Assembly (NCBI GenBank): GCA_965644265.1
Contig: OZ286466.1
Coordinates: 70,556,001 to 70,620,000, forward strand
DNA length: 64,000 bases
Origin: Glycera tridactyla
Lineage: Eukaryota
Direction of reading: 5' to 3'
A program made the position numbers and the translations under genes. Every line of letters begins with the position of its first letter. The stretch's first letter is position 1. Positions 406-41,700 of this stretch are shown in pieces. The notes under the pieces were generated by a model that saw nothing but the letters and a program-made list of their open reading frames with translations, did not search any database and was not told where the DNA came from.

Positions 406-645
406 CTATTGTGGTGCCACAGGCTCTGTTCAGTACCCATTGGTCTACATTTGGATGGTTGGTCTGGATGTTGTCAGACCAGTTAGGATCCAGATGCAAG
501 TAACACTTGCCATTAAAGTCAATGGCTAGACAAGACTGGTCATCGAGACAGGCCTTTTTACACTCCTCAGCGTTGGATGCTGATGGAACAACGATTCCAC
601 CAAAGGCTAGCTGGTTTGGGAAAGATTCCCATGAGATGCTACAGT
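406..645 (-). CDS. Exon E49: PAN/Apple-like domain, class B; the gene continues beyond the left edge
   Basis: AG/GT, 240 nt, open; ends in phase 1 with a donor and no stop codon. Confidence 0.87.
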
Positions 646-3600
646 CTGAAAACGGATGAATTTGAAATACAAGATGTATCCATAAAAAGATGGTTTGGAT
701 TGTGGAAGATGAGGACATGACCTGAATACATGGTACACACTTCAGAATGGTGGATAATTAGAAAATATATTCCGTGGAAATCTGGACAGGAGGATTACAA
801 AACCCATCGTATTCTATTAGTTCTTTACTTCCACCCAAGTTTTAGTTTTTGGAGTATGTGACACATATTGTGATAAAAATGTGAATTACCATCTGCACAG
901 TTTTTGTCCAGCACCCATTGGTCAACCTCAGGATGATTCGTTTGGATTCTGTCTGGCCAGTTAGGATCCACATGCATGTAACACTTGCCATTGAAGTCAA
1001 TAGCTAGGCAGGACTGATTATTCAGACATTCATTCTGACATTCCTGTACATTGGATGCTGATGGGACAACAATCCCACCAAATGCTAGCTGTGATGGGAA
1101 GAAATTCCATGTAATGCTGCAGCCACCAGCTGAAATGAATAAGCATGGGTTCATCAATTGCGGAGATATATGCATGTGAGGGTTCGTGACTTTACCCAGA
1201 GATTCTTATGTCGTAATATCTTGTTCAGGGTCTCTATAGATGGCAGCCACCAATGGGCGCGGGTCATTTTCTTTAAAGTGTTGCCATCGGGGATGATGTG
1301 GCCTAGGTGTAGCATCATCCCTTCTCTTCTTCTCTATATCTTTTGGAGTGGGGGGTTGAATGGAAACATACCTTGAAATTTCTCTATCATCTGTCTAAAG
1401 GCATTTTCTACCAAAATTACACTATCACCAGATTTCTTTCTCTTCACCTCTTTCCAATCCCTCTAAGCTTTTCTTATCTCTTCAGTGAAATGGTCTCAGG
1501 TGTGGGTAGCTGACGGTTTGCCTGTAGCAGATATTGTCACTATGCAAAAAGCAGGTACCAGGCACACCAGTTCTGGGTTACTAGGGCTGCGACTAGGTTA
1601 CTAGGTTGTGTGATGGCATTGTACTGCGAGCATAGGGCATACCATGATTGTAAAGCTGGCTAGAAGGTGACAGTTTGTCATTGAACACATTGGTTGAGTA
1701 TTCTCCGAATCTAATGCCTCTCCTAGTGTCAAGTGCTGCGCTTTGCAAAAAAAAAGCATTGCTATCAGACTTGAGTGTTAACTTCCAGCCAGTTACATAG
1801 CTAGATATGCCATCATTAGATTCACTTTTTTTCATGAAGAGTAGGTAGAGGTGTGTCTGAACTGTCAGCTACTTCAACTTGACAACTTCTCAGGTTCCCC
1901 ATCATCTTGTGTCCAGGGTTTGTGAGAGTGATGTCTGCAGTGGAGAGAACATCTAGCTTTCATTGACCAGGAACATACGGCATACATAACCCTGTGGGTT
2001 GATACATGCCGTTAAACCTCAAACAAACAAACGAACAAATCGTAATATCTCGCGTGAGTATATTTGACACAGATATCAATCAGGGCAGAATGCCTTAGAT
2101 CGAACCGATTTCATATGCGAAATCGTCTACATGTCTTTAATTATGTGACAATGCAATTGATACACTTTTTACCACTATTGTATCATGCTATATCATTTTC
2201 AGCAAACGTTATGCCATCCACCAACTATTTTGTTTCATATGTCTGTTGTGTGAAACATGGCCAGCAGAAATGAGGTGAATGCATCATCAGTCAGAGACGA
2301 TACTCCCGAATTCAGACCCTGCATTGTTGAGTGATTTGAGTGCACATAATTGAAGGAGACTGCATTCTAGGGTTTGGTCATAGCCAGAAAAGGGTTGCTT
2401 TGAGGAAGATAATTACCTATTGTGGTTCCACAGGCTCGGTTCGGCACCCATTGATCAACATTAGGATGGTTAGTTTGAATTCTGTCTGACCAGTTAGGAT
2501 CAACATGCATGTAACATTTTCCATTGAAATCAACGGCAAGACACGATCGATTGTTGAGGCAAGCATTTTTACATTCTTCGACTGTAGGGGCACTAGGAAC
2601 AACGATTCCACCGAAGGCAAGTTGATTAGGGAAAGATTCCCATGTGATACTACAATCAGGGGTCGCTGAAAATGAAGAGGCATATGTACATTCCTTATGG
2701 TTGTCAAGGACCTACTTGGTTCAAGCGTTGTTTCAGTTTCCATGAGATCTGTTATCGCGGTACAGCTCATTGTATTTCCTTCATTCCTGACTCATCACAA
2801 TGGGATGCATTTTTGCTGATAGCAAATTTTCGAAGTTGTCATATTGTTTAGATCAGAGTCATATCTCGAATGAACGACATTCATGAGTGTTTACCTGTGG
2901 ATCATCATGGAATCGAGAGCTGTGGATTGGTAGGATATTGTTTGTGTGTTTTCTTGGTTCTGGTGGAGAACTGGTTTGCATTCTGATCATCCGGTGATTT
3001 CATTTTTGTTTGCATTGACTTGGAGTCGGAAACCCCTTCAGCAACGTGCTCATTGAAATCACCATATTCTGGATTTCGTGCTGGTTGAGCGTGCGGTGCT
3101 GGGCAAGAAAAAGCAAGAATTACCTATTGTGGTGCCACAGGCTCTGTTCAGTACCCATTGGTCCACATTTGGATGGTTGGTCTGGATGCTGTCAGACCAG
3201 TTAGGATCCAGATGCAAGTAACACTTTCCATTAAAGTCAATGGCTAGACATGATTGGTTATTGAGACAGGCCTTCTTACACTCCTCAGCATTGGATGCCG
3301 ATGGAACAACAATTCCACCAAAGGCTAGCTGATTTGGGAAAGATTCCCATGAGATCTTACAGTCTGAAAGTGAACGAGCATGAATTACCAAACGTGTCCA
3401 TCAAAAGATGGTTCAGATTTGACACAAACTTTGGAATAGTGGATATTTAGGACATATGCTCCATGTTAATATGGACAGAAAGAGTATTCAATTTGTTTTC
3501 TACTTTCACCTCAGTTTATGTTTACAAAGTATGTGACACTCATAGTAACATGAATGTTTCATACGTCCATCCCAGTTTCTGTTTTCAGAGTATGTGACAC

Positions 3601-6600
3601 ATATTGTAATATGAATGTGAATTACCTTCTGACGCACACACTTTTTCCAGAACCCACTGGTCAACCTCAGGATGATTTGTTCGGATTCTGTCTGGCCAGT
3701 CAGGATCCACATGCATATAACACTTGCCATTCTATTGGTTCTTTACTCCCACCCAATTTAAGTTTTTTGAGTATGTGACACATATTGTGATAAAAATGTG
3801 AATTACCATCTGCACAGTTTTTTTCCAGCACCCATTGGTCGACCTCAGGATGATTCGTTTGGATTCTGTCTGGCCAGTTAGAATCCACATGCATGTAACA
3901 CTTGCCATTGAAGTCAATAGCTAGGCAGGACTGATTATTCAGACATTCATTCTGACATTCCTGTACATTGGATGCTGATGGGACAACAATCCCACCAAAT
4001 GCTAGCTGTGATGGGAAGAAATTCCATGTAATGCTGCAGCCACCAGCTGAAATAGATATCCATGAATTCATGAAATCGTGTAATTCATATCTGTGTGGAG
4101 TTTGTGATTTCATCATGAGAATCTTCACAATTTCTTAAGAGTGGTCGTTATATGACATCATTGCATCCTGAGATTTCAAGTTAGGGTGTATGGCAATGTT
4201 GAGGTAATGGGATAATTTTGTGTGGTAGTATCTTGAGTGAGTGTGTGGCACAATTATCGATCGTAGCAGAGTGCATTAGATTGAACTGATTTCATATGCA
4301 AGATTTTGTACATATCTGAGATCAGGTGACAATGCAATATCCTCTATACCCTAATGTTTCGTGCTATATCGTTCGCAAACATTTTGCCATCCATTAGGTA
4401 CTATACTCATATGTCTAGTTTTGTACAACAAGTGCATCTGATGTTTGACTACTGTGATATTGTGTATGGGGCACTCAGCAAAAAATGAAGTAATATTCTC
4501 CAAAAGGTCCAAGATTATGCTTTGAAGATGATTCCAATGAAACAAGTGTTATGTGATGAAACCTGTGTGTACACTCAAGAGTTGTGAGGGAAACTTTTCC
4601 TTCCGTGCTGCTGTCCTTTGGAACCATCATTGCGATCAATGCCTTTATTTTGATAAAATGCCACTGAGTACTTTTAAACAAACCAAAATGTTTTGATCAT
4701 ATTTAGTATGCTATTCTGGCTGTGAAAGATAGCGTTCCAGCGTGGTTACACAATTCATAATAGTATATCTCAGCCTATATCCTACATTTCCGCATTCCAG
4801 CGTGGTTACACAATTTATATAGTATATCTCAAGCCTATATCCTACATTATCATTTTTGTCATGTATTATTAATATTATCATTTTATTATGGTCAGTGTTG
4901 TTACTATTATCATCACGCATATATGTCTCCTTATGCTGCCCTGTTAATTATCTGTCCGTATATGGACAACTCTATCTGTATATGGATTTTAGCCAGTGTG
5001 ACCCCGACATATATATTTACGACTTGTCTCAGAAATGTCAACTTATGATGAAATTTAATATTACAAATTTTATTGTTGCTCCTTTTGACACCTGGCTTAA
5101 AGATACTCTGGAAATGGTCGTTCTATGGCGGCTAATTGTTTCTATCATTTTGAAATAAAAATGTCTTATCTTTGTCTTATCTCATGTGATGTGATTCTAC
5201 CATCAGTTAAAGCCCTATTCCACCCAATTCAAGACCCTCCATTGCCAAATTAGACATGGTGAGTTTGAGTGTAACTAATCAGAGAACATTGCATCTAGTG
5301 ATTCGTGTAGTGAAGAAATGCGTCAGTTTCGGAAATGGTTGAGAATGATAATTACCTATTGTGGTTCCGCAGGCTCGGTTCGGTACCCATTGATCCACAT
5401 TCGGATGATTAGTTTGAATTCTGTCTGACCAGTTAGGATCAACATGCATGTAACACTTTCCATTGAAATCAATGGCAAGACACGATCGATTGTTGAGGCA
5501 TGCATTTTTGCATTCTTCGACTGTAGGGGCACTAGGAACAACAATTCCACCGAAGGCAAGTTGATTGGGGAAGGATTCCCATGTGATGCTACAATCGGGA
5601 GTTGCTGAAAATAATGACAGATGTCTCTTCATGTTTTTATATTACTCCACCTAGGTTTAAAGTTAGATAGGAGTCTCATCATATTGCCATATGATCGTAT
5701 CATCGATATACTAGGCCTATTCGACTGGTCGGTTTCGTTGAGTACGGCCGGTCCGTTGACTACATTTTGTATTCGAGTGGCCGCTTAACACTTTTTCATT
5801 GTGTACGAACTCAACGGTCGTTTGACTATGTTGAACTCGTTAAACGAAACCTATTTGGTTGGGCTACGGCCGTTGAGTACATTGCTGTCAACACACATTC
5901 AACAAAACCGACCAGTCGAATAGGCCTATTATATGCGTGATTTCTAGATCATTCAAGTAAAGTCAGCTGACAATGAAGGTACATTGTAAATGTGACCCCT
6001 CATAGAACCAATTGAAAATTAGGTTGGCCCTTTGTAGAGGTACATTAGCTATTCAAAGACAATCGTAGTACACCCCGCAACATGAGAGACAGAGATATTC
6101 ATATAAGAACGACATACACTGATCCCGCCTAAAATCCTGGGAACAACTCATATGGCCTTGAATTTGTTGGATAAGATAGGATGAACCAAAATGAAACAGG
6201 GTTATGTTAAGGTTTTAGGTCCACTTTCTGCACTTGAGTAGGCTAAATCGGACCACCTGCCAAGGAGGAGCGAAGATGAAGGGTGAAACGTTCCTGCATG
6301 GTGGGACCGGGGATTGAACCCCGGACCCATTGCACGCCGGCCCAGCATGCTACCACTGAGCCACCAAGGCAGGCCCGTACACGTGGGATAGTGAATATTC
6401 GAGTTCGGATGATATCATTTCAGGGATCTTCTGCTGCAGTAATTTGAAAATCACCTGCTATGATTCAAGAATTTTTTTTAAACAAGCAGTAGATAGACAA
6501 AATTCAATTTTGATTACCTATTGTTGTGCCACATCCCCGGGTAATTACCCATTGGTCTACTTCAGGGTGGTTGGTTTGAATTCTGTCTGACCAGCTCGAG

Positions 6601-9600
6601 TCCACATGCATATAACACTTCCCATTGAAATCAATGGCTAAGCATGATTCGTTGTTGAGACAAGCTGTTTTACAATCTTCAACTGAGGATGCAGAGGGGA
6701 CAACGATTCCACCAAAGGCGAGCTGTTCTGGGAATGATTCCCATGAAACTGTACAACCAGCAGCTGAAAAGAGATAAGTTCTGGGTAAGAATGTATTCTA
6801 AGCATGATAAAATATATGGTTGTGTGTGCTGACTTCTGCTCCACGTGAAGGACAATTTAGCACTGTGTGATCGGTGATGGTGATTGATATCTCATTCTTC
6901 GGGTGTGGGTTAACCTAGCTATAGCTATAGACAAGTTATAGTAACGTTGATTACCTATTGTGGTGCCACATGCTCGGTTTACTACCCATTGGTCAACGTT
7001 CGGATGATTGGTTTGGATTCGGTCAGACCAGTTGGGGTCGACATGCATGTAGCACTTGCCATTGAAGTCAATGGCTAGGCAGGAACCATTGTTGAGGCAT
7101 GCATCTTTACATTCCTCAACATTAGATGCAGATGGAACTACAAGTCCACCGAATGCAAGCTGGTTCGGAAAAGAGTCCCAGGTGATACTACAATCAGGTG
7201 TTGCTGAAATCAGATCAATATACCGTGCTTCAACATGTGTGCAATCCATTCTAGTACTTGCAAACCTCCCAAGTGTCATTTCGTTTTATGCTTGGTAAAG
7301 GCTTCGTTTCGGTAGCATCAACCACAAGCTATGTGGTCGTGAATTCGTCCAAGGAATTTTTATAAATGTGAGAGAACTTGGTATGGCCATCATACTATGT
7401 CATTAAGCAGTTATAAATAATTCATACCAATAATAACACGAAAACCTCGATCATTGCTCATAGCATTTTGATTCAGGTGTGAGGAGCAATTTTTCGAAAA
7501 AGATTACGGTACTTCAAAACGATTGAATATTTGTGTCAAGTACAGATAATATGCGGAAGATATGCATGGAGCACATGCAATTTTACCTATTGTAGTGCCA
7601 CATGCCCGATGTAGCACCCATTGGTCCACATTTGGATGATTGGTTTGAATTCTGTCAGTCCAACTAGGCTCGACATGCATATAACACTTGCCATTGAAAT
7701 CAATGGCTAGACATGAAGTATTGGCTATACAGGCATTTTGACATTCCTGAACATTAGAGGCGGATGGGACAACAATTCCCCCAAAGGCAAGTTGCTTTGG
7801 GAATGCTTCCCATGAAATTCTACAGTCTGAAATCGAAATGACAGGGAGGATTAGGTTGCTTCTAGGCGAAAGCAGGTTTTATGTGTCAATATAGATATAT
7901 TTGGATCCATTTCAAGATGGTATAATTATAAACAGTCTAAATACATATGAAACACGAACAAGTCAAACTCTGAACTAATTTATATGATCGTGCTTTGTCA
8001 GGGTCCTATGTCTTGCTGGAAAGTTATGGCGAATGGACAATGCCATTCTTGAAAAATTATGAAGCCACCACTATGGCTCATTGTTTTTTATGTGTTTTAG
8101 GCCAAAGTATCAGGACTCGGCTTGTTATGGGGAGGAAGGTTACTTTGCAATCCAGTACAAATTGATGAGGATTGGGATGAGTGGTCGAATATTATTTTGT
8201 CAATTTGAATCCAGGTGTATGTCAACCAAAGACTGATGTCTATGACTAATATTTTGACATTCTTTAACAACAGGTGGAGATGCAACATGGTTCCAAAAAT
8301 TGTCAAGCCTTCCTCTGGAATAAATTCCCCGGATATTTATAGTCTGATCACCGTTTATGACTTCACACTGCAAATATTCTCTTCGATGTTCAATATATAG
8401 ATAAGGTATCTGAACCTTTGCACTCCTCTGGATACCTGTATTAGGTTTCCGTAACCTGATAGTTCTGTGCTACAGTACAAAGCATAGGTCCACAACCATC
8501 AACATACTCATATGTGTCAGCTGTCCTTTTGATAGAGTTATCATTGAATGATGAACTGGTTTTACAAAGTTAATTTAGAGGAGATGTTGATGATAATGGG
8601 TATAGATACAAGATGACAGAAACTTTGTGTCATGCCCTTGCATCTCACCTGAGAAGATGGCAATGGTGGGTTATGAAATCTCTGGTTACCTTTTGTGGTG
8701 CCGCATGATCGGTTCGGTACCCATTGGTCAACGTTTGGATGATTGGTTTGGATTTGGTCGGCCCAGTTAGGATCGACATGCATATAACACTTGCCATTGA
8801 AGTCAATAGCTAAGCAGGACTGATTGTTCAGGCAAGCATCTTTACATTCTTCAACATTCGAGGCAGATGGAACTACGATTCCACCAAAGGCAAGCTGATT
8901 TGGAAAAGAGTCCCAGGTAATGCTACAATCAGGTGTCGCTGAAATCAAATGAAAACAACTACCTCAAACATGAAATATGTCTAAATAATCTTATCAAACC
9001 CTTGGATATAGTAACCTGAAATGCTCAATATAAAAGTGCTATCACCTTATAAAGTCCAAACAGTGATGCATTTCAGGATTCTGCACTTACCTGGGAATTT
9101 ATTAATATGGACAGAAGTCATAGCTACCTATTTTCGTTGTCTATATTTAGTCCTGATAATGGCCATACCTGCATCCATCATCCTCAATCATTGCTAATTG
9201 CTCATCGCATTTAAGTGAGAATATCCCACTTTATCACAAATTAGCTTGGATTGCTTCGAGAATGAAAAATGAAGAAAATACGCATGTTAGTCATGCAATT
9301 GCTTTACCTATTGTTGTGCCACATGCTCGGTGCACAACCCATTGGTCCACATTGGGGTGATTAGTTTGTATATTGTCGGTCCAGTTAGGGTCCACATGCA
9401 TATAACACTTGCCATTAAAATCAATGGCTAGACATGAACTATTACTTATACAGGCAGTTTGACATTCCTGAACATTTGAGGCCGATGGGACAATGATTCC
9501 CCCGAAAGCTAGCTGACTTGGGAATGCTTCCCATGAAATTCTACAGTCTGAAATTGAAATCACATGGTTGTTTAAACATGTTCCTGAGATCAGGCACGCC

Positions 9601-12600
9601 TGAAAAAGAATTCTTGAATTATTTAGATCTAATCTGAATGGTAATAGTATAGAGCAAAGAAAAATGCCAATTCCTGATTTACGATGTCTATCAGGGGCAC
9701 GTTTTGGCACTTTCGCCTGTCAGCAGCCTGTTGATCCTACACATGCGCAATGAGGACACCACCAAAACGATGTCTGTTGCTGGATTGTTAATTGACCTGC
9801 CATCTATCGGCAAAATCCAGCACAATACAATATTTTAATACCTGAGAATCCCTTGTAGAATTGTGCTTGTTAGAGATTATTCCTTCCAATGATGAAATTT
9901 CCTTCCACTGAACAAAGTCATTCAAATGGAATGGGTGCTGTGTCACATGATCGATGACGTCATCGACAGAGGAAGACTAGCTCTAGAGGTTGTCCGCGGA
10001 TTGTTGACAAGCTGTCAACAATGTTCTTGCTAACAATTCGCTGACAATAGTGACGAGTTTGTCATCGCGAAAACGTGCCCCTAGTTGTATCTCGTAATAC
10101 TGGTCCTATAAGCTATGGCTGGTATAGACATGCTAACTCATAGACCTATCCACAGTCATGTTATTTGATCAATTATTTGTCTTAGAGCTGAAGTCAACAT
10201 GAGTAGATGAATGGATTCGAAAAAAAAATGTAAGCCATGGATAAGGTTACCTATTGTTGTGCCACATACTCGGTTTAGTACCCACTGATCGACATTGGGA
10301 TGATTTGTTTGGATCCGGTCAGGCCAGTTGGGATCAACATGCATGTAACACTTGCCATTGAAGTCAATTGCTAAGCAGGACCGATTGTTTAGGCATGAAT
10401 CTTTACATTCCTCAACATTAGATGCAGATGGAACTACGATTCCACCAAAGGCAAGCTGATTTGGGAAAGGGTCCCAGATGATGCTACAATCAGGTGTGGC
10501 TGAAATCAAAGGAATACAATCCATCGCAACAAATTCTTTGAATGACCGTTTCATCTCCAGAACCGTTGCTATCATTCTTGAAAATCTTCTTACATGTATC
10601 TTAGGTTCCCGGTGGTTCTGTGATAACTTCAAATGAATTTTGATATGAATATTAGGACATTTCTCGAAATTTTGATATGATTGAGTGTTTTCGTACGAGT
10701 ACATTGTATTTTCCTGGGCGGGGATGTATTAGTTTCAGAAATATCAAGTAATCTATTCAACAGTGCTAGTGTACCTTGAATTGGAAACTGGCTCGATATA
10801 ATACCATTTTCGAGAATTTAAGGTGATCAATACAAATCGACTTTTTCAGTGCATTATATAAACTTGGCTCCTAGCGAAATACCCTATGAAGAAAACTCCG
10901 AAAAAGGTTTACCTATCGTAGTGCCACAGGCTCGATGCAGTACCCATTGGTCCACATTTGGATGATTAGTTTGAATTCTGTAAATCCAACTAGGCTCGAC
11001 ATGCAAATAACATTTGCCATTAAAATCTATAGCTAGACATGATGTATTGGCAATACAGGCATCCTGACATTCTTGAACATTAGAAGCGGATGGAACAACA
11101 ATTCCATCAAAGGCTAGCTGATTCGGGAATTCTTCCCATGAGAATCTACAGTCTGAAACTGAAATTGCATAGATGAATGAACAGGTTCCTGTCCAATTTG
11201 ACTGATAATATTTATGTGGGTTGATTTTCAGTGATATTTGTAAGAAAACGTGTTTGCAGCTTTGACTATATGAGTCTAGATACATAATTTCCATACTGAG
11301 CTTATTCTCCTGAAAGGTATGTTGAGTGAACATTTTCTTTTTTGAGATTATTCCTAGCCATAATATTCATTTCTCTTCCCTCAATCCGATGTGTCATGGA
11401 GGGTTATGCGCAATTTTCGGGTGATGCTGGCGATAAAACCAGACTCATTTCATTACATTACATGGATCATGCATATGCCCTTCTTTTTTAAAGAGGGTTT
11501 AAAGAGGATATTGCCTCTTGTTGCACATTGCAGATTCAGTATCTATCGGTCATCAATTGGATGCATTCCATGTGGTCAGTAAGAGTCCATATGCATGTAT
11601 CATTGTTCAAGGCAAGGCTGGTCGGTAAAACATACTATCTGACATTCCTCAACTATAACTGCAGAGAGAGCAATGATCCCTTCATAAGTCGGTTTTCATA
11701 TGAGATGCTGCTGCTACATCCCGCTGAACTAGTATGAGGGAAACTGCAAATTTTAAGTGACTTTCAAAAGTAAATGCCAGACTTGTCCATTGCATACAGT
11801 GCTAACTTGCGAATGGTAGCTGTCTGATAGATCAAAATTGCCTTCTCATGCATGTCATCATGTAATTTTATCATAGAATGCACGAGTTTGGTTTGATTTA
11901 TAACATAAGGGCCCTTTGGCGGAAGAGATCATCTGAAAATCAAATCAATGCAGAGTTTGGATCTGCCATGAGTTGTCAGATACTGAGATGAATAGACATT
12001 GAATATTGAATCATAAGAATAATAAGGATCCTTTCCAGTGCCAGTCACTATGGAAAGGATGTCATATAACACTACAAGTATTTGATTTGAATGGTTGACA
12101 CCAATACTATATAGAAATGTTGATTACCTGCAGTAGTGCCAGACACTATGGAAAGGATGTCATATAACACTACAAGTATTTGATTTGAATGGTTGACACC
12201 AATACTATATAGAAACGTTGATTACCTGCAGTAGTGCCAGACACTATGGAAAGGATGTCATATAACACTACAAGTATTTGATTCGAATGGTTGACAACAA
12301 TACTATATAGAAACGTTGATTACCTGCAGTAGTGCCACATGATCGATTTGGTACCCATTGATCAACATTAGGATGGTTGGTTTGAATCTGGTCGGCCCAG
12401 TTGGGATCAACGTGCATATAGCACTTGCCATTGAAGTCAATGGCTAAGCAGGACCGATTGTTCAAGCAAGCATCTTTACATTCCTCAACATTAGAGGCAG
12501 ATGGAATTACGATTCCGCCAAAGGCAAGCTGATTCGGAAATGACTCCCAGGTGGTGCTACAATCAGGTGTTGCTGAAATCAGAGATTAATACACAGCCTG

Positions 12601-14642: not shown

Positions 14643-14709
<67 letters not shown>

Positions 14710-26700: not shown

Positions 26701-29700
26701 CCAGTTAGGATCGACATGCATATAACACTTGCCATTGAAGTCAATGGCTAAACAGGACCGATTGTTTAAGCATGCATCTTTACATTCCTCTACATTCGAG
26801 GCAGATGGAATTACGATTCCACCAAAGGCAAGCTGATTCGGGAAAGATTCCCAGGTGACGCTACAATCAGGTGTGGCTGAAATCAGAGAAATAAAATGTG
26901 CTTCAAACAATCACCCAACTAATTTATCCCTCACACCTGGTAGTTGACTAATACATCTTGGTTATCTGCTCGTGCAGTTCTCTTCAATACACAATTCATG
27001 AGATTAGTCTATTTGCTGATCAGATAATGCTTTTCTCCAAAAGAAAACCTGACACAAGAACAACCTCGTGGTGACCTTCGTATATATGGATAATCTGGGA
27101 CTAAGATGGCATCTCGAATATGTGGATATACATGCTTTTCATATTGATGTCGAACAATGACATCACCATCATGCATGCGGAATCCTGGTCCATGTATGGA
27201 ACAAGACTTCTGAAGGACCTGTTATCACCCCATGCCATAGCATGGATATAATTATTACTGGCAATTTTCGGTCAATATTTTTCACCATCTGTACAGCCAA
27301 CATTGTCTGGGTGTTATCATATTACTATTATTAGAATGTGCCTTGTATCATATCATTACTACTTACTATTACTTGTATCACTATTATTATTATCATCATT
27401 ATTAACATCACAAAGTGTCCTACCATACAATGTGTATTAGTAGTATTCATATTGTAAGAATATGTCTCAAGATGCACACATCTTAGCTTTCCGGATTTTA
27501 TAACTCAACAATATCATCTCCATTATTATCATCCAATTATCATGATTATGACAGGGATCCTCTCTAAATGTTGGGGTATATTGGGTTTACTGCTCGCACA
27601 TATATATTTGATATATGGCGGGCTGATTTCCTCCCATATTGTATATGCATCATATGACAACAGTTCGAACTGGATGGACGACAGCGATATGATATGAAAA
27701 CTTCAATTACCCATTGTAGTGCCACATGATCGGCTTGGTACGAATTGGTCAACATTAGGATGGTTGGTTTGAATCTGGTCAGACCAGTTTGGATCGACAT
27801 GCATATAGCACTTGCCATTAAAGTCAATAGCTAAGCAGGACTGATTGTTTAAGCATGCATCTTTACATTCTTCAACATTCAAGGCAGATGGAATAACGAT
27901 TCCACCAAAGGCAAGCTGATTCGGGAAAGATTCCCAGGTGACGCTACAATCAGGGGTGGCTGAAATCAGAGAAATAAAATGTGCTTCAAACAATTACCCA
28001 ACTAATTTATCCCTCACACCTAGTAGTTGACTAATACATCTTGGTTATCTGCTCGTGCAGTTCTCTTCAATACACAATTCATGAGATTAGTCTATTTGCT
28101 GATCAGATAATGCTTTTCTCCAATAGAAAAGCTGACACAAGAACAATCTTGTGGTGACCTTCCGATATATGGATAATCTGGGACTAAGATGGCATCTCAA
28201 ATATGTGGATATACATGCTCCCCATATTGCTGTCAAACAATGACATCACCATCATGCATGCAGAATCCTGGTCCATGTATGGAACAAGACTTCTGAAGGA
28301 CCTGTTATCACCCCATGCCATAGCATGGATATAATTATTACTGGCAATTTCCGGTCAAAATCTTTTCACAACCTGTACAGCCAACATTGTCTGGGTGTTA
28401 CCATATTACTATTATTAGAATGTGCCTTGTATCATATCATTACTCACTTTTATTCGTATCACTATTATTATCATTATCATTATTATTATTAACATCACAA
28501 AATGTCCTGCCATTCCATGTATATTAGTAGTATTCCTATTGATAGAATGTGTCTCATGTTGCACACATCTTAGCTTTCCGGATTTTATTAATCAACAATA
28601 TCATCTTCATTATCATCGTCCAATTATCATGATTATGACAGGGATCCTCTCGCATTGTTGGGGTATATTGGGTTTACTGCTTGCACATATATATTTGATA
28701 TATGGCGGGATGATTTCCTCCCATATTGTATATGCATCATATGACAACAGTTCGAACTGGATGGACGACAGCGATATGATATGAAAACTTCAATTACCCA
28801 TTGTAGTGCCACATGATCGGCTTGGTACGAATTGGTCAACATTGGGATGGTTGGTTTGAATCTGGTCAGACCAGTTAGGATCGACATGCATATAGCACTT
28901 GCCATTGAAGTCGATGGCTAAGCAGGACTGATTGTTCAAGCATGCATCTTTACATTCTTCAACATTCGAGGCAGATGGAATTACGATTCCACCAAAGGCA
29001 AGCTGATTCGGGAAAGATTCCCAGGTGACGCTACAATCAGGGGTGGCTGAAATCAGAGAAATAAAATGTGCTTCAAACAATTACCCAACTAATTTATCCC
29101 TCACACCTAGTAGTTGACTAATACATCTTGGTTATCTGCTCGTGCAGTTCTCTTCAATACACAATTCATGAGATTAGTCTATTTGCTGATCAGATAATGC
29201 TTTTCTCCAATAGAAAAGCTGACACAAGAACAACCTTGTGGTGACCTTCCGATATATGGATAATCTGGGACTAAGATGGCATCTCAAATATGTGGATATA
29301 CATGCTCCCCATATTGCTGTCAAACAATGACATCACCATCATGCATGCAGAATCCTGGTCCATGTATCGAACAAGACTTCTGAAGGACCTGTTATCACCC
29401 CATGCCATAGCATGGATATAATTATTACTGGCAATTTCCGGTCAAAATCTTTTCACAACCTGTACAGCCAACATTGTCTGGGTGTTACCATATTACTATT
29501 ATTAGAATGTACCTTGTATCATATCATTACTCACTTTTATTCGTATCACTATTATTATCATTATCATTATTATTATTAACATCACAAAATGTCCTGCCAT
29601 TCCATGTATATTAGTAGTATTCCTATTGATAGAATGTGTCTCATGTTGCACACATCTTAGCTTTCCGGATTTTATTACTCAACAATATCATCTTCATTAT

Positions 29701-32700
29701 CATCGTCCAATTATCATGATTATGACAGGGATCCTCTCGCATTGTTGGGGTATATTGGGTTTACTGCTTGCACATATATATTTGATATATGGCGGGATGA
29801 TTTCCTCCCATATTGTATATGCATCATATGACAACAGTTCGAACTGGATGGACGACAGCGATATGATATGAAAACTTCAATTACCCATTGTAGTGCCACA
29901 TGATCGGCTTGGTACGAATTGGTCAACATTGGGATGGTTGGTTTGAATCTGGTCAGACCAGTTAGGATCGACATGCATATAGCACTTGCCATTGAAGTCG
30001 ATGGCTAAGCAGGACTGATTGTTCAAGCATGCATCTTTACATTCTTCAACATTCGAGGCAGATGGAATTACGATTCCACCAAAGGCAAGCTGATTCGGGA
30101 AAGATTCCCAGGTGACGCTACAGTCAGGGGTGGCTGAAATCAGAGAAATAAAATGTGCTTCAAACAATTACCCAACTAATTTATCCCTCACACCTAGTAG
30201 TTGACTAATACATCTTGGTTATCTGCTCGTGCAGTTCTCTTCAATACACAATTCATGAGATTAGTCTATTTGCTGATCAGATGATGCTTTTCTCCAATAG
30301 AAAAGCTGACACAAGAACAACCTTGTGGTGACCTTCCGATATATGGCTAATCTGGGACTAAGATGGCATCTCAAATATGTGGATATACATGCTTCCTTTA
30401 TTGATGTCAAACAATGACATCACCATTATGCATGCAGAATCCTGGTCCATGTATGGAACAAGACTTCTCAAAGACCTGTCATCACCCCATGTCATAGCAT
30501 GGATACAATTTTCACTGGCAATTTTCAGTCAAAATTCTTTCACCACCTGTACAGCCAACAATGTCTGGGTGTTATCATATTACTATTATTAGAATGTGCC
30601 TTGTATCACATCATTACTACTTACTATCATTCGTATCACTATTATTATCATTATCATTAACATTACAAAGTGTCCTGCCATTCCATGTGTATTAGTAGTA
30701 TTCCTATTGATAGAATGTGTCTCATGTTGCACACATCTTAGCTTTCCGGATTTTATTACTCAACAATATCATCTCCATTATTATCATCCAACTATCATGA
30801 TTATGACAGGGATCCTCTCTAAATGTTGGGGTATATTGGGTTTACTGCTCGCACATATATATTTGATATATGGCGGGATGATTCCCTCTCATATGGTATA
30901 TGCATTATATGACAACAGTTCGAACTGGATGGATGACAGCGATATGATATGGAAACTTCAATTACCTATTGTAGTGCCACATGATCGGCTTGGTACGAAT
31001 TGGTCAACATTGGGATGGTTGGTTTGAATCTGGTCAGACCAGTTGGGATCGACATGCATATAGCACTTGCCATTGAAGTCAATAGCTAAGCAGGACTGAT
31101 TGTTTAAGCATGCATCTTTACATTCCTCTACATTCGAGGCAGATGGAATTACGATTCCACCAAAGGCAAGCTGGTTTGGGAAAGATTCCCAGGTGACGCT
31201 ACAGTCAGGGGTGGCTGAAATCAGAGAAATAAAATGTGCTTCAAACAATCACCCAACTTATTTATCCCTCACACCTAGTAGTTGACTAATACATCTTGGT
31301 TATCTGCTCGTGCAGTTCTCTTCAAATCACAATTCATGAGATTAGTCTATTTGCTGATCAGATAATGGCTTTCTCCAATAGAAAACCTGACACAAGAACA
31401 ACCTCGTGGTGACCTTCCGATATATGGATAATCTGGGACTAAGATGGCATCTCAAATATGTGTATATACATACTTTTCATATTGATGTCAAACAATGACA
31501 TCACCATCATGCATGTAGAATCCTGGTCCGTGTATGGAACAACACTTCTGAAAGACCTGTTATCACCCCATGTCATAGCATGGATATAATTATTACTGGT
31601 AATTTTCTGTCAAAATTCTTTCACCACCTGTACAGCCAACAATGTCTGGGTGTTATCATATTACTATTATTAGAATGTGCCTTGTATCATATCATTACTA
31701 CTTACTATTATTCATATCATTATTACTATTATTATTATTATTATTAACATCACAAAGTGTTCTGCCATTCCATGTGTATTAGTAGTATTCCTATTGTTAG
31801 AATGTGTCTCATGTTGCACACATCTTAGCTTTCTGGATTTTATTACTCAACAATATCATCTCCGTTATTATCATCCAATTATCATGATTATGACAGGGAT
31901 CCTCTCGCAATGTTTTTTTTTTTTTTGGTTTACTGCTCGCACATATATTTTTTTGATATATGGCGTGATGATTTCCTCTCATATTGTATATGCATTATAT
32001 GACAACAGTTCGAACTGGATGGACGACAGCGATATGATATGAAAACTTCAATTACCTATTGTAGTGCCACATGATCGGCTTGGTACGAATTGGTCAACAT
32101 CAGGATGGTTGGTTTGAATCTGGTCAGACCAGTTAGGATCGACATGCATATAGCACTTGCCATTGAAGTCAATGGCTAAGCAGGACTGATTGTTTAAGCA
32201 TGCATCTTTACATTCTTCAACATTCGAGGCCGATGGAATTACGATTCCACCAAAGGCAAGCTGATTCGGGAAAGATTCCCAGGTGACGCTACAATCAGGT
32301 GTGGCTGAAATCAAATGAACGAAAACTGCTTAAACAAATTACCAACAGATCTTTCTCTTACAAATAATCACAGTGGAATCTTCCTCTTTTATTCATATCG
32401 ATAGGTGCTAAGGTGTTGAATTATTCCGAGGGATATTCAAATATAACCACAGGTTTGATTCATTATCACATCTCGATGTTTCGATCTCCATTCTGTCATT
32501 TAATTCGAGGACGATATGTTCATTAGGAGTAAATTTAGCCAAAACAAAGACAACATTAACAGAGATAGTAAGCCCTCTAAATTTCCAGAATATTTCAATG
32601 TGAGGAGAATTGTTTGGTTAGATAGTCTTCATTCACTGTTCTTTATATATTGGATCGCAACAGAAAAGCTCAAGGTGAATGCATTTTGAGTGGCAAATGA

Positions 32701-35700
32701 TTTAATTCAATGGGAAATAATGCACGAGTAACGTACGAAGTATACTCAATCAATTTATGTACTGTAGGGCCTCAGGCTAGGCATGGAATCATTGTCCATA
32801 TCATCCTGTGAAGTTGCTGCATAGATATGATGGAAAATACAGATGCAAAGTGGTTGGCAATATTCAGTATCAATCAAATGAAAGTTCATGCAAAATCACT
32901 CTTTTCCACTGCAAACAGTGCTGAATTGACCGTACAGCGACAGTTGAATCACCTCAGAATTCGAATATATATATCATGCTTTACGAATCGAATAGTATCA
33001 AATACTGCCCCTGTCTTATATGCCGGACTGGATGGGAAGAAATTGATCCTTTCAATCTGAGTAAATACTGCCCCTGTCTTATATGCCAGACTGGATGGGA
33101 AGAGATTGATCCATTCAATCTGAGTAAATACTGCCCCTGTCTTATATGCCGGACTGGATTGGAAGAAATTGATCCTTTCAATCTGAGTAAATACTGCCCC
33201 TGTCTTATATGCCGGACTGGATTGGAAGAAATTGATCCTTTCAATCTGAGTGGATAATATCGAAAACTCCATTTACCTACAGTAGTACCACATGCCCGGT
33301 TCAGTACCCATTGGTCAACATTTGGATGATTCGTTTGGATCCGGTCGGGCCAGTTGGGGTCAACATGCATGTAGCACTTGCCATTGAAGTCAATGGCTAA
33401 GCAAGACCGATTATTGAGGCATGCATCTTTACATAGCTCAACATTAGAGGCAGATGGAACAACAATTCCATCAAACGCAAGTTGATTTGGAAAGGATTCC
33501 CAGGTGATGCTACAATCTGGAGTGGCTAAAATCAGATAAATATAATCTGTGTCAACTGATTTTCCATCAAACATGGCAATCACGTGGATTCAATATTTGT
33601 ATTTCTTCGAACATCTTGTAGACAATTTATGTAGAAACTTGAAGCAGAGGATTTTACAATTCACCCCTAACTGAGATTGATACTGCCGATATATTTGGAT
33701 ACTGGTGCTCGAATTTGAAATTGTTTGTATCAGATCTATCACACTGATATGAAAGATATCTGTTCTAATGTAAAGCAAGTCTCAGGAGCTTTAGACTTTG
33801 TTCATTGCTCCATATATATATTGACATTGATTGGGGAGAAATTGTCCCTATAGATTCTCATTGTGTACTGTGCAATGGCAAATTGATTGGTGTGTATTGG
33901 TTTGTTAGTTTTAACAAAAAAATGCAGAAGATAGTCATGAAGGACAGGCATTCGGTTTACCTATTGTAGTGCCACAGGCCCGGTGTAACACCCACTGGTC
34001 CACATTTGGGTGATTAGTTTGGATTCTGTCAGTCCAACTAGGCTCGATATGCATATAACACTTGCCATTGAAATCAATGGCTAGACATGACTGATTGTTT
34101 ATACAGGCATTTTGACATTCCTGTACATTCGAAGCAGAGGGAACAACAATTCCATCGAAAGCTAGCTGATTTGGGAATGCTTCCCATGAGATTCTACAGT
34201 CTGGAATTAAAATTACATTTCATTGAACAGGTAGTTGTCAAATACTCGTCACCCTTAAGGTGTGATAATATTCGTTTGAATCGAACCTTAACAATACCGA
34301 CATAGACAATATTAATAAAAAAAGTAATACTGACATCATGCCCGCGTAACTGACCAAGAGAGTTTAGAAAATACATTATGTTATCAAAGTAGTTTGGCTA
34401 GATTGAGTTATATTTTTTAATCATCAATTATGTCATATGAAAGTTTCGAAATTTGTTTCTATTCTTGGACCGATAATATTGCATCAGAACTCCATTAAAT
34501 GCGCATGGAATCAATTTCATTATTCAGAATTGCCATCCACAGTGGTACTAATAATGGTTTGTGCACATATAGTGAGCTGTGGAGCAAATTGTGTGGTGTG
34601 CCTGTCATGGGCATATAATTTACCTGAAGGGCAGTTTCTATTCGGGACCCATTGGTCAACTTCAGGATGATTGGTTTGAATTCTATCTGGCCAATCAGGA
34701 TCCACATGCATGTAGCATTTGCCATTGAAGTCAATTGCAAGACAAGATTGATTGTTTAGGCAGATATTTTGACATTCCTCAGGCGTGGATGCGGATGGGA
34801 CAACAAGTCCACCGAAGGCAAGTTGTGATGGGAAAAAGTCCCATGTGATGGTACATCCCCCTGCTGAAACGAATCCCGGATAAATCAATAAATATCTGAC
34901 CACTGGTTTCTCAATACAAAATGATTACTTCGCTGTTTGTAAGGGTATCTCAATCATATGAAAACAGAGGTACATGGGCATTTCGGATTACATTGAATAT
35001 TGAGTACAACTGCCGAGGTAAAAATCCCTCCTTCAATTTCAGTGTCTTCGAAATGCAGGCCATATATTGTATACTGGTCCTACTGTATCACTGATACTCC
35101 AATTCATTACAGAAGTGGACAGAACAAAGGATGATTCATGAATATCTGCATTCTTCGGAGATTTATAGAAAATCGAATGGAGTAGAGATCCAGGAAGCTG
35201 TGTGAGAAATTAATGCCAATTACCGATGGTAGTGCCACATGCTCGGTTCAGTACGAATTGATCGACTTCTGGATGATTGGTTTGGATGCGATCAGGCCAG
35301 GAAGGATCAACATGCATATAGCACTTGCCATTGAAGTCAATGGCTAAACAAGAACGATTGTTGAGGCATGCATCTTTACATTCCTCGACATTTGAAGCAG
35401 ATGGAACAACGATGCCATCAAAGGCAAGCTGATTTGGGAAGGATTCCCATGAAATGCTACAACCAGCAGCTGCAATGGAATTAATGTCATCAAAACATTC
35501 TGCTTTGGAACAATGTCTTCCCATGAAATGCTACAACCAGCAGCTGCAATGGAATTAATGTCATCAAAACATTCTGCTTTGGAACAATGTCTTCCCATGA
35601 AATGCTACAACCAGCAGCTGCAATGGAATTAATGTCATCAAAACATTCTGCTTTGGAACAATGTTTATGTTACAACTGATGTTCTCTACATCTGATGTTC

Positions 35701-38700
35701 TCTATATATTCATTCTGCCGAACAATGTTTGAATTGTGATGCAGAATCAAAGCATATTTTCGAGTGAATATTAGCGAAACTGTGGAAGAAACGCATATGG
35801 ACAGCCTGGCTTCACTACCTGGCTTGAGGTATTTTGATGTAGGGGTTATATACAAAGATTTAATGACTCCCCGAAATACTGAATTGCACTCGATGTATCT
35901 ATTACTACCATAAAATAATATGTAGACGAAGTAGTAATGGATCGCCAATCTACCCTCTGCCACTAATGATTTGTTATGTCGCTGAATATGAAAATATTGA
36001 TTACCTATTGTAGTTCCACATGCCCGGTTCGGTACCCATTGGTCAACATTTGGATGATTCGTTTGGATCTGGTTGGACCAGTTGGGGTCGACATGCATGT
36101 AGCACTTGCCATTGAAGTCAATGGCTAAGCAAGACCGATTATTCAAGCATGCATCTTTGCATAGTTCAACATTAGAGGCAGATGGAATTACGATCCCGCC
36201 AAACGCAAGCTGATTTGGAAAGGATTCCCAGGTGATGCTACAATCAGGTGTTGCTGAAAGTGTATGAACATAATCTTATTTTACAGTTTCCCATCACTCC
36301 AAGATTTGACCAATTAGATATTATTATCCTGATCATAGGCCTCCCCGAGTTCTGTATGATGCTGGATAATTTTCAGCTAGTCAGACTCAGTTACTTTTGG
36401 TATGATTGTGAATTGTATTAACTTAATTTTGTGGCCATTATACATCCTCTAATTCAAGCACCTCTTATTCAATAGCATCGATTTCGGTACTCTCTGTCAT
36501 TTTTTGGCAAACTGCAGTGAATCAACAAGATTTTCATGAATTAGCATCAATAAACCTGCACTGAGTCGAGATTAATGTATTTTTTTTTAGACGAAGGTCT
36601 GAATAGTTACAATATCGAACGATTCCAACAAATGGAGTGAACATTTCACAGGCTTGTCATATTCCCACCAGTCTGCATGGATGTTTGAATTGAATTTCAT
36701 GAATTCACCATGATGAGATCAATATTTTCAAAATTTCCTGATCAATTGCGAATGATTCAAATGATCTATAATATGAACCCCTATATATCAAGATAAATGG
36801 CCCCGGTCCACATCAGATATGGTAATGTGAATTGTCTTTTGAAGTCATAATTACTGTTATTTGTAGGTCCTTATGGATCATTTGGTAGGTCACATTCGAG
36901 CTTTTTGGATAATGATAACAATTACCTATGGTAGTGCCACAAGCTCGATTGAGGACCCACTGGTCAACATTGGGATGGTTAGTTTGGATTCGGTCAGACC
37001 AATTCGGATCAATATGCATATAACACTTCCCATTGAAATCGATGGCCAGGCATGACCCATTGTTAAAGCAAGCTGTTTTACACTCTTCGGCTGACGATGC
37101 TGATGGAACAACGATACCATCAAAAGCTAGCTGATTTGGGAATGACTCCCAAGAAACGCTGCAATCAGGAGTTGCTGAAAGTGAAAGAAATTGCAAGTGA
37201 TGAGTTCCTGCTATGTCTCTGGATTTGTTTATATACTATTTGTTCACTTCCCTTGTTCCAGTGAGGGAATCAATCGATTTCATGATTTACTCCCCAATTT
37301 AAAAGTGAGCTTTGATAAAGTAGTTTTCTCCTGTCCCACTTTGGGATTTCATGATTAGATTGACTTCACCATTGAGAAATGGAGTTTATGGACCAAACTT
37401 TGGACTTCTGGTTTAATTGCAACATGATGTTTAAATATTGTAGTAAATGGAAGAAAATGTACCTAATGTGGTGCCACAGGCCCGGGTTAGGACCCACTGG
37501 TCTACATTTGGATGGTTGGTTTGGATTCGGTCAGGCCAACTTGGATCAATATGCATGTAACACTTTCCATTGAAATCAATGGCCAGGCATGACCCATTGT
37601 TAAAGCAAGCTGTTTTACACTCTTCGGCTGACGATGCAGATGGAACGACGATACCATCAAAGGCTAGCTGATTTGGGAAAGACTGCCAGGACACACTGCA
37701 ATCTGGAGTTGCTGAAAGGGAAAGAAATTGCAGGCGATGAGTTTCTGATATATCTCTGGATGTTCCAATATACTAGCTATCTGTCAACTTTTGTGAATTT
37801 CGATTGGAGAAATAATTTTCCCTTGTTCCAGCATGATTTACTCCTGAATTCAAAACTGAGCTTCGATTGATGAAGTAATTTTCTCCTGTTCCTGTATCGG
37901 AATCAATTGATTTCATGATTTACTCCCCAATTTAAAACTGAGCTTTGAGTGATGAAGTAGTTTTCTCCTGTCCTACTTCGGGATTTCATGATTGAATTGA
38001 CCTCACTATTGAAAAATGGAGTTCATGGATCAAGCATTGGATTTCTGGTTTAATTGCAATGTCGTGTCTGAATATTATAGTAAATGATAGAAAATGTACC
38101 TAATGTGGAGCCACAGGCTCGGGATAGGACCCACTGGTCTACATTCGGATGGTTGGTTTGAATTCGGTCAGACCAATTTGGATCAATATGCATATAACAC
38201 TTTCCATTGAAATCAATGGCCAGGCATGATCCATTATTATAGCAAGCTGTTTTACATTGTTCGACCGACGATGCAGATGGAACAACGATACCATCAAAAG
38301 CTAGCTGATTTGGGAAAGACTCCCAAGAAACGCTGCAATCTGGAGTAGCTGAAAGTGAAATACATCGCAGGTGTAAATTATTCCATGCCTGTATGATTGA
38401 AACATTAAAAGATAGTTACCTAATTGTGTTCTCGTGTTGGTGAGTTTTTTTTTATGTGATAATGCGTACAGAAATAAAAGGTATGGTTTTATGATATATA
38501 TATTCAATTTGAACACGTCCAAGTTCATTTAAGCAATAAAGAGAGCATATTCGAATTCAAATATTTGTCTTGTGAGTACTTTCAGATATCACCTCAGTAT
38601 CACTACTTATGTATGTTTTTGTTCATTAACAGTGTGATGCTCTTCCTTTATGGGAAGGAATCATGAACTTACATTTTTTCTTTAAAATTTATTATAACTC

Positions 38701-41700
38701 AATCAGAAATTACCTCATCCATATCGATTTTTTATCGAACAGTTTCTCAAAAACATATATGAACAAATATATTACATTACCTATTGTAGTGCCACAGACA
38801 CGGTTCAGCACCCATTGGTCCACATTTGGGTGATTGGTTTGGATCTGGTCAGACCAGTTAGGATTGACATGCATGAAACATTTGCCATTAAAGTCAACGG
38901 CTAGGCAAGACATATCGTTCAGGCAGGCATATTGACATTCAAGAGCTGAAGATGCTGACGGAACAACAAGCCCACCAAATGCCAATTGATTCGGAAAATA
39001 TCCCCAATTGATGCTGCAGCCAGGTTCTGAAATTGAAGCGTACGTTATTGATAATGGACATTCCTTTGGTAATTGTCCCAAACTTTGTTGTTCAATTAAG
39101 AAGAAAAATATGAGCATTCACTTTAAATTTGCATGTATGACAATGAGTTAAGAACTTCAATCAGGTTCTAACCAACTTTGTTGTATAATTCAATAAAATA
39201 CTATAAGCATTTAGTTACTAAATTGGCATGTATGACATGAATTAAGAATTTCAATCAGGTTCTAACCAACTTTGCTGTATAATTCAGTAAACTAGTTTGA
39301 GCATTTAGTTACCAAATTTGCATGCATGACATGAGTTGTGAACTTCAACCAGATTCTTTCTCACTTTGTAGTATAATTGCATAAAACACTACAGGCATTC
39401 AGTTACTAAATTTGCATGTAAGACATGAGTTAGGAGCTTCAATCAGGTTCTAACCAACTTTGTCCAATCAGCAACAGAGTTGAGGTTTCAATAGATAGGT
39501 TTAGCTTCTGAAAGGTCAGATAGCTACTTTGAAGTTAGATAAGCAGCAATGTCGGATTAACATGCCATGACATAGCATCTAAATATTGATACTGAGAGGC
39601 AGTCCTGATGGCATTGTCTCCTAAACCTTATATGGGAGCAATTCACACAGTTATAGCTAGAAATATAATGGATTAGAACAAAGTATATTTAGCTTCAGTT
39701 TATCTAGTAGATTGAATGGATATATTACATCGAGATGTGTTATTCATAATTGCTAAAAGTACGAAATTGTCCATGCTCCGTAGACAAAGAAAAGAAAACA
39801 ATGTCCCCTTCTTGCTTTTCACTGAGATCACATTTCATGGCACCCTCCTGCAGCCAATTTGTTACACCTCGAACACACAAATGAACTGATATGCAACCCA
39901 ACAGCCAGACTGAAAATCTCCCATAAAGTAAGTGTCACAAGTAACTTGATGGGCAAACATATACAAACCGGTTTTTGGTCTTGGCTGGAAATAAAAGATG
40001 TTTTAGTTGTTCCCACAGACCCATGTAACCGTCCCCAAGAATTAGACCAAATGACAAAAAAGTCGGAATATCCATTTTGTTTGCAATTTCACATAGGCAT
40101 GATGCCAGAGACGATCACTTTCCTGCTCGCTCATAGTCACAGGCCATTGAGAGGAACTCTGAGATGATAGTGTGGGAAATTGTCCATAGTTTAACACTTT
40201 GTTGTGAAAAAAAACTGCTACGGAAATTTATACATGCTGGCATCCACAGCGGATTACATGAGACTAATCACATCATAAATATATTTCAGCTCTCAATCAG
40301 ATATCAAATGATGGCCAGTCTTTTACCAACCATATGTCAATATTCGAAATGGAGATAGCAGGTGAATTTAAATTCGATTTTGAACAAAAATATATATATT
40401 CAACTCAAGACGGGCAGGTCAACGCGAGTATTTTTTGCCATTAAGATTACAAATACAATACAACAGATTAACGACATCCAGCAAGAATTATAATATATTA
40501 CAATGGATTCAACTTTGCTAGATTCGTTTACATATGGTTGAATCAAAATTTCGTTGATTTCTTCATAGTTGTCGTTCAACAGTCCAAGTGAAGCATCCTG
40601 CATACAATACTTAAGAATTGATTTTGCTCCTCATCTTCGAGAAAGCGGAATTATCACCTGAGTTGCAACTTTTATGCCAGCGTTTGATTGATCATCTGGT
40701 ACTTTTATCATTATTAACTGAAAGGCTTACTTGAGGCATGATTAGGTGTACTTTGAAGGTCCGGATAGATATTGAGACTGAGATTGATGCTGCCAAAATA
40801 TTTGGATACTGGTGCATAAATTTTTCGTATCAGATCCCTCACACTGATATGAAATATATCTGCTTAAGAGTATAACATGTCTCATAGGTTGTAGGCTTTG
40901 TTTATTGCTCAATACATATTGACTTTGATGTTAGGAGAACTTGCCCCTTTAGATTCTCATTGTACACTAGGCAATGGCAAATTAATTGGTGTGTATTCTT
41001 TAGTTAGAAGTATAAAAAAGGCTTAAATTGATGGTTGCAGAAGATCCATGACAGTTTTTCATTAATACAGATGCCTGAACAAACTTGATAAACCCAACAT
41101 ACAATCACCTGAAAGGAGTCCAATCCAATCCAGCATTGAATGACATGTTTCCCGTAGACATTTCATGAATTAACACCAATCCCAGATTCCAGTGAACGGA
41201 CAGAACCCATTGACAAATTGTGTGCATTTGCAGCTATGCAATTCTGATCATTCACGGGCTGATGTATGTTCCTCGATTGTCTGATTTACTCATCACTGGA
41301 AAGTAATGGTAGTAGTGAATCCTCTCATAATTCTACTCACAGGTCTACATGTTTTCTTACTCGAAATATGTGATTAAGTGGTATCCATGCTGATTGAAAG
41401 GCTTAAATGTAAAATAAGGCTTAAGTTAATGGTTGCTAAAGATTCATAACAGTTTCTCATTAGTACAGATGCCTGAACAAACTTAACAAACAAGCATGAT
41501 TTGTGTTGATTTAAGATGAAAATACCCAAAAATAACTTTTTCAATTTTTCACTCAAATATTTGTCCATATTCGAATAATCCTGCCTAGATTGAAGATATG
41601 TTGAGCCCTACTCGATCAATCAATCTTTGATTAACACCACTATTTCCCCTGCGACAAATGCTATGAGTGATCCAGATACTATCAAAAGAGCCCATGGAGT

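Follow-up and report, generated by a model that had tools for sequence, protein, structure and literature searches.

Background

PAN/Apple domains occur in tandem in two proteins of the leech Helobdella robusta, T1FVV8 (16 PAN stretches with VWA and C1q) and T1FVK1 (Apple domain-containing). These are the best named relatives of the system described here, an array of PAN/Apple exons in the annelid Glycera tridactyla. The array lies in a stretch of 64,000 nucleotides (GenBank assembly GCA_965644265.1, contig OZ286466.1, positions 70,556,001 to 70,620,000 of the forward strand), called the window below; positions count from its first base, and negative ones lie to its left. An exhaustive profile-free search returned 137 relatives, the closest at 59% identity. 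A JGI contig of 6.9 kb encodes 17 PAN domains and C1q in a single uninterrupted open reading frame (ORF) of 1,969 amino acids, so in that relative at least, many PAN modules share one reading frame. The gene model of leech T1FVK1 begins with a signal-peptide exon and continues with exons of about 240 nt, most of them with one PAN domain; four of its donors, read by eye, are all in phase 1. Both leech proteins resemble the Glycera locus in their tandem PAN/Apple domains and in the same six-cysteine pattern. A VWA domain also lies downstream of the PAN exons in Glycera, on the same strand, and may belong to the same polypeptide as in T1FVV8. Unlike the array, the leech proteins are 29-36% identical to it and hold 9-17 PAN domains (about 90 here), and near-identical repeat units were not observed in them.

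Several proteins are predicted to share the fold of the module: leech antiplatelet protein (LAPP, 1i8n), the HGF N domain, the plasminogen PAp domain, the apple domains of factor XI and the apicomplexan lectins MIC4 and SML-2. Collagen, heparin, proteins and galactose are among the ligands of such PAN/Apple domains (PMC7191736 on LAPP and factor XI). LAPP consists of one such domain and factor XI contains four, versus about 90 here, and the identity of the module to LAPP is 24%.

Other systems are comparable in gene architecture. In Dscam clusters, as in the array, equally sized exons have been duplicated in tandem inside a single gene. One exon per cluster is picked there by pairing of docking and selector RNA elements, whereas pairing elements were not found here and inclusion of all exons gives a sensible protein. 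In the kringle IV type 2 (KIV-2) region of human LPA, a multi-exon unit is repeated head to tail together with its introns, the frame is kept, and the exons are far more uniform than their number predicts, as in Glycera. The size of the LPA protein is set by germline copy number, with more than 40 isoforms (PMC6314250). The LPA unit is a two-exon kringle of 5.6 kb, in contrast to PAN units of one, three and four exons and 1.1-2.7 kb; its copy-number polymorphism is documented, whereas the array is known from one assembly. DMBT1 (salivary agglutinin) is also a secreted glycoprotein of tandem, near-identical, cysteine-rich domains. It acts in pattern recognition, and its capacity for binding is altered when domains are deleted or change in copy number in the germline (PMC5435793, PMC9038570). 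Its domains are however of the SRCR type, 8-13 in number and separated by SID linker exons, and its immune role is established. Finally, the sponge aggregation factor genes are large extracellular genes with phase-1 introns (154 of 155) and domains in repeated exon modules, and the authors of that study speculated that symmetrical exons may aid alternative splicing (PMC5400394). They differ from the array in their Calx-beta and Wreath domains, spread over three exons each, and in high allelic polymorphism as opposed to the strong module conservation found here.

A tandem array of PAN/Apple exons

The best reading of the sequence, in our view, is that the window represents the middle of one giant minus-strand gene, which would code for a secreted protein with about 90 or more PAN/Apple domains. 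For the analysis, flanks of 120 kb on the left and 50 kb on the right were added to the window, and a module profile was searched over the resulting 234 kb. All 131 PAN matches were on the minus strand. The contiguous, high-identity array extends from 42597 to about -30070 and comprises about 90 exons, that is, at least 7,250 residues. Because all PAN matches share one strand, and because 89 canonical exons follow each other with introns of 191-1,960 nt, we regard the array as a single transcription unit.

The window itself holds 49 intact one-exon modules on the minus strand (42597..406) that total 12,015 nt or 4,005 codons. Positions 39026 and 406 are exact exon boundaries: an exon begins at the former, and the window's last exon ends at the latter; 48 intact exons lie between them, and one divergent extra exon is found at 42597-42352. 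With boundaries set by homology, exon lengths are 240, 243, 246 or 249 nt, and 237-276 nt in a few divergent cases. The first-pass annotation had described every exon as symmetric, of phase 1-1 and a multiple of three in length. This holds for all 89 automatically defined exons (the window plus 30 kb to its left), each of which starts with two leading bases of a codon and ends with one trailing base. That 89 of 89 exons share one phase is far beyond chance, yet it reflects a common origin followed by tandem duplication and does not represent 89 independent events.

The splice sites are equally regular. Every exon is preceded by a pyrimidine tract and CAG (consensus TTTCAG/ in 95-100%, with the slash marking the exon boundary) and followed by GTA (consensus G/GTAAT(T), positions +1 to +4 conserved at 94-100%). 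The last base of the exon is G in 87 of 89 cases, so any exon-exon junction rebuilds the normal codon of the downstream exon; the earlier statement that exons spliced in order keep the frame in any subset thus extends to the junction codons. Since splice sites are uniformly close to consensus, no exon is marked as weak. An internal AG located 7 nt inside the exons of classes F and M would break the frame if used as acceptor, and other alternative boundaries, for example CCAG within the T-P-D codons, shift by multiples of three. The shortest intron, between 6955 and 6763, measures 191 nt, precisely the minimum given before.

The identity of the modules as PAN/Apple domains is secure. Five of six modules tested against Pfam PAN_1 (PF00024) score 24.8-28.0 bits at a cut-off of 21.4, and the module starting at 39026 reaches 20.8. 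The six cysteines follow the Apple pattern, the outermost two lying close to either end of the domain. In an alignment of 33 modules and relatives, C31, C35, C41 and C50 do not vary at all, and conservation of C4 and C78 is 90% or more; within the 69 unique modules of the array, all six are invariant. An AlphaFold model of one module (mean predicted local distance difference test score, pLDDT, 92.7) shows a helix packed on a curved antiparallel sheet. Its best match in PDB is leech antiplatelet protein 1i8n, with a template modelling (TM) score of 0.74 and a root-mean-square deviation of 2.1 Å, and the next are the HGF N domain, plasminogen, the apple domains of factor XI and kallikrein, and apicomplexan PAN lectins. 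Foldseek E-values of these matches are 1e-3 or worse, as expected for a query of 82 residues. Linkers between neighboring domains are 6-9 residues long.

Modules differ at discrete sites and in linker length, as the first reading of the locus had it. Counted over 69 modules, the FGG/FDG site has G in 56 and D in 13, the QW/QF site W in 58 and F in 11, and the HP[N/E]VD site N in 48, E in 19 and D in two; V[L/P][N/H]R varies as well, and the N-terminal linker differs by 0-3 residues. The most variable position of the whole domain is the middle residue of an N-x-S sequon, located at residues 35-37 from the first cysteine, whose N is present in 63 and S in all 69 modules. Because the sequon is kept throughout the modules, the predicted protein could carry about 90 N-glycans.

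Purifying selection on the modules

The modules are under strong purifying selection. According to the Nei-Gojobori method, the ratio of nonsynonymous (dN) to synonymous (dS) substitution rates is mostly 0.05-0.10 between classes and 0.17 at most, with dS of 1.0-2.3 and dN of 0.05-0.19, and dN exceeds dS in none of 2,306 pairs with dS above 0.05. A tree of the 69 unique exons contains 541 synonymous and 268 nonsynonymous changes (dN/dS 0.13). Of 75 residues, 35 are invariant, most of them in spite of repeated synonymous change (as many as 17 events at a single site). A significant nonsynonymous excess was seen nowhere in this tree (minimum p 0.16). Diversifying selection was thus rejected, as dN/dS is 0.05-0.17 and no codon shows such an excess.

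Comparison of exons with their own introns leads in the same direction. Among 12 regular three-exon units (L-M-C, see below), divergence is 0.94% in exons versus 6.0% in introns, and variable columns number 23 of 729 in exons versus 238 of 1,265 in introns. Across the four-exon C-D-H-F units the corresponding divergences are 4.6% and 22%. Since exons of the L-M-C units are conserved about six times better than introns, each of these 36 near-identical exons must be individually constrained, which is hard to reconcile with rare inclusion of any one of them.

Introns were further searched for elements that might direct exon choice. Only 10 inverted pairs of 18 nt or more were found in 43 kb, none of them recurrent. 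No 8-12-mer outside the splice-site regions is common to half of the 26 junction types, and the longest complementary runs between intron pairs stay at the level of a shuffled control. A Dscam-like docking and selector scheme is therefore rejected, having neither a recurrent intronic motif nor pairing above the shuffled control, and the earlier opinion that mutually exclusive splicing is unsupported is borne out.

Organization of the array and its surroundings

Clustering of peptides gives the class order, in the direction of transcription, as Z A BBB C D E F, C x7, G F C H F, (C D H F) x3, followed by C D [dead H] C [dead] F I J C F C K C, (L M C) x14, N O P. Head-to-tail units of exons with their introns are thus nested in the array: C x7 with a period of about 1.08 kb, C-D-H-F x3 of about 2.7 kb and L-M-C x14 of about 1.99 kb, all keeping the frame. 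Successive L-M-C units measure about 1,991 and about 1,979 bp in turn, a hint of a super-unit of six exons.

No module of the array was found further 5´ than the divergent exon at 42597-42352 (246 nt, phase 1-1), which is outside the range 39026 to 406 of the original observation. This exon scores 113 bits with the hidden Markov model (HMM) of the module and 21.2 with PAN_1 (cut-off 21.4), and its splice sites are ttttgcag/ and CAA/gtaggt. It is followed by eight single exons of classes A, B, B, B, C, D, E and F (39026-38781, 38348-38100, 37711-37463, 37174-36926, 36253-36005, 35469-35224, 34863-34624 and 34200-33961; region 33961..39026, minus strand as all others), assigned by exon table, class map and PAN_1. 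The monomeric class-C sub-array (26628..33525) contains seven exons of 249 nt with peptides 88-90% identical to the query module, at 33525-33277, 32304-32056, 31214-30966, 30133-29885, 29046-28798, 27959-27711 and 26876-26628.

The next region (13372..26193) has 19 exons and is dominated by the four-exon repeat, with a period of about 2.6-2.8 kb. It opens with G 26193-25951, F 25513-25274, C 24851-24603, H 23788-23549 and F 23128-22889, continues with the three C-D-H-F units at 22568-14958 and ends with C 14417-14169 and D 13617-13372. Irregular single exons of classes C, F, I, J, C, F, C, K and C occupy 5356..12572 (12572-12324, 11158-10913, 10499-10251, 9547-9308, 8938-8690, 7826-7587, 7203-6955, 6763-6518 and 5604-5356). 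The L-M-C repeat starts within the window (406..4046) with exons at 4046-3807, 3363-3124, 2665-2417, 1129-890 and 645-406, and about 12 further units follow leftward to about -24224.

Three decayed relics lie within the array, all without a usable acceptor, and the claim that the locus tolerates dead exons proved right for each of them. The dead class-H exon at 13121-12871 has lost cysteines 1, 3 and 5, carries a 9-nt deletion and lacks both a pyrimidine-tract acceptor and a homologous donor. The relic at 11686-11519 is interrupted by three in-frame stops, and its identity to a module is about 33%. The partial exon at 3731-3626 is a duplicated 3´ half of a class-L exon with a donor and no acceptor; a tandem duplication of 178 nt x1.8 at 3581-3909 includes it.

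The small duplications of the array seem to be clustered where exons meet introns. At 35444-35664 (minus strand), an exact tandem duplication of 74 nt x3 comprises the acceptor and the first 26 nt of the exon starting at 35469 (attccattgcag/CTGCTGGTTGTAGCATTTCATGGGAA). It leaves two decoy acceptors upstream, the use of which adds 74 or 148 nt and breaks the frame; as the copies are 100% identical, the duplication either happened very recently or is an artefact of assembly. At 12037-12337 (minus strand), a duplication of 98 nt x3.1 with 98% identity takes in the donor of the exon ending at 12324 and the 13 nt before it (GGCACTACTGCAG/gtaatcaacg). The intron therefore contains two decoy donors, at a distance of 98 and 196 nt from its start, and use of either would shift the frame. 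A tandem repeat of 63 nt x4 (96% identity) at 33000-33251 begins 26 nt past the donor of exon 33525-33277 and is the reason why the open frame of this exon reaches 200 codons. Finally, an inverted repeat of 43 nt in an intron at 5699-5941, with arms 88% complementary and 157 nt apart, looks like a small foldback or an insertion of the miniature inverted-repeat transposable element (MITE) type.

Downstream of the array, divergent PAN exons with Ser/Thr/Pro-rich tails are present. A VWA domain (PF00092, E 3.4e-37) is located at -119.7 kb on the same strand as the array and is the best match of the whole genome to the Helobdella VWA. Upstream, a second PAN cluster spans +65974 to +104240 (minus strand) with about 25 divergent exons, about 35% identical to the array. 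Its exons are mostly of 237 nt and phase 1-1, with donors A/GTGAGT or GTAAGT, and it may be either the 5´ part of the array gene or a paralogue. Between array and cluster there is a PAN-free gap of 23 kb (42.6-66 kb). It contains a 93-nt satellite (10 copies, 95% identity) at 56577-57504 and a degenerate repeat of 31/93/124 nt at 58247-58787; similar repeats of 93-94 nt are found at 39081-39463 and 50224-50573. Runs masked with N in the window are 44479-44646, 45803-46128, 49547-49686 and 62991-63221. Other PAN-like clusters, 30-47% identical to the module, occur elsewhere in the genome (C42:73.16-73.48 Mb, C42:45.73-45.90 Mb, C28:31.6 and 33.1 Mb, C32:47.04-47.07 Mb), which suggests that it holds a large PAN family arranged in tandem arrays.

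Discussion

We consider it probable that the exons are concatenated constitutively into a giant multivalent PAN protein. The array would have grown by unequal crossing-over between units of one, three and four exons. Its exons would then be spliced in order, with essentially all of them included, giving a rod or string of beads of at least 7,000 residues. We infer that the function of such a protein would depend on the number of identical binding domains, that is, on avidity for a carbohydrate or collagen-like matrix ligand. Further along, the array would run on into the divergent PAN domains, glycosylated linkers and VWA, as in the PAN-VWA-C1q proteins of Helobdella. Length variation, if there is any, would most likely arise from germline copy-number change of units and not from programmed exon choice, and the array is probably variable in copy number in the germline. 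The sequence-level tests all point to a conserved multivalent protein of structural or adhesive nature in which domain number would matter.

Several observations weigh against this model. Firstly, word-index protein searches with the 82-aa module, and with the 200-aa stop-free ORF restricted to the module, returned no close proteins and no transcript-derived match; the inclusion of exons, the 5´ end with its signal peptide and the continuity with the VWA exons are thus predictions from genomic sequence. Secondly, no C1q match was detected in the 234 kb examined, nor near the VWA domain, down to -120 kb. Thirdly, purifying selection means that each exon is used, not necessarily that it is used in every transcript. 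The donors, lacking G at +5, are good and less than maximal, and the near-identity of neighboring introns and exons could favor occasional skipping. Some background exon skipping is likely in any such gene.

The rival explanation that survives best, although we hold it to be unlikely, divides the locus into several tandem genes, or a gene and pseudogene arrays, all of which would begin and end separately. It can draw on the 23-kb PAN-free gap with its masked stretches and satellites, on the different donors of the upstream cluster (A/GTGAGT) and on the larger gaps of 6.8 and 11.7 kb left of -30 kb. Besides, a signal-peptide exon was not located, and no search for one was made in the 42.6-66 kb gap. 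However, all exons from 39026 to -30070 possess a phase-1 acceptor as well as a phase-1 donor, so none of them can start or end a protein, introns are short, and neither a different type of domain nor a terminal exon was detected within the array.

Somewhat less probable still is a designed diversification system, as raised in the first-pass annotation, where combinatorial or stochastic in-frame skipping would supply cells or individuals with many isoforms of varied module number and mix. Every ordered subset of exons is indeed in frame with junction codons preserved (87 of 89 exons ending in G), module classes do differ at discrete positions, splice sites are interchangeable, and the same idea was put forward for the all-phase-1 aggregation factor genes of sponges (PMC5400394). 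The possibility of in-frame skipping therefore stands. The system built upon it gains no support, given purifying selection, uniform splice sites and the failure to find pairing elements. Modules with dN/dS of 0.05-0.13 have no site of nonsynonymous excess (minimum p 0.16), and their most variable site is the free middle residue of the N-x-S sequon. Each of the 36 near-identical exons is about six times better conserved than the introns, which in turn contain no motif or complementarity above the shuffled control. Moreover, the 1-1 phase is inherited: it is common to the divergent upstream cluster and to the Helobdella homologue, and so represents the layout of the family instead of an adaptation of this locus. 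In metazoan secreted proteins generally, modular domains lie mainly on exons of the 1-1 type (PMC7259759). In-frame skippability is a by-product of this ancestry and by itself no evidence of design. Concatenation, regarded before as equally plausible, is plausible and in fact better supported than diversification, not its equal.

To the same low degree we credit a broader proposal, in which the array would serve as a generator of length diversity, with germline change of unit copy number and seamless skipping together producing varied valency and class mix. If this were true, length-variable PAN proteins could help the annelid to recognize microbes or to tell self from non-self, in the manner of DMBT1, LPA or the sponge aggregation factors. 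Purifying selection, together with a search that found no regulatory element, argues against a programmed system of this kind as far as sequence can tell. The reading of the locus as a decaying, unexpressed and functionless tandem duplication, which would explain the three dead relics and the lack of matching expressed sequences in our searches, is highly improbable and was rejected, because 89 exons keep open frames, six cysteines and intact splice sites, dS exceeds 1 at dN of 0.05-0.19, and exons diverge relative to introns at about 1:6.

Returning to constitutive concatenation, we see several consequences. In-frame skippability alone should not be taken as a sign of a Dscam-like diversity system. 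The array is also a clear case of satellite-style nested repeats that are built of coding exons. Module classes are old (dS > 1), yet 35 of 75 residues do not change, which points to a strongly constrained binding surface that would be repeated along the predicted protein. None of the relatives retrieved (9-17 domains) comes close in array length to this predicted single gene with its roughly 90 Apple domains, and the gene is well suited to work on the growth of avidity proteins through unequal crossing-over.

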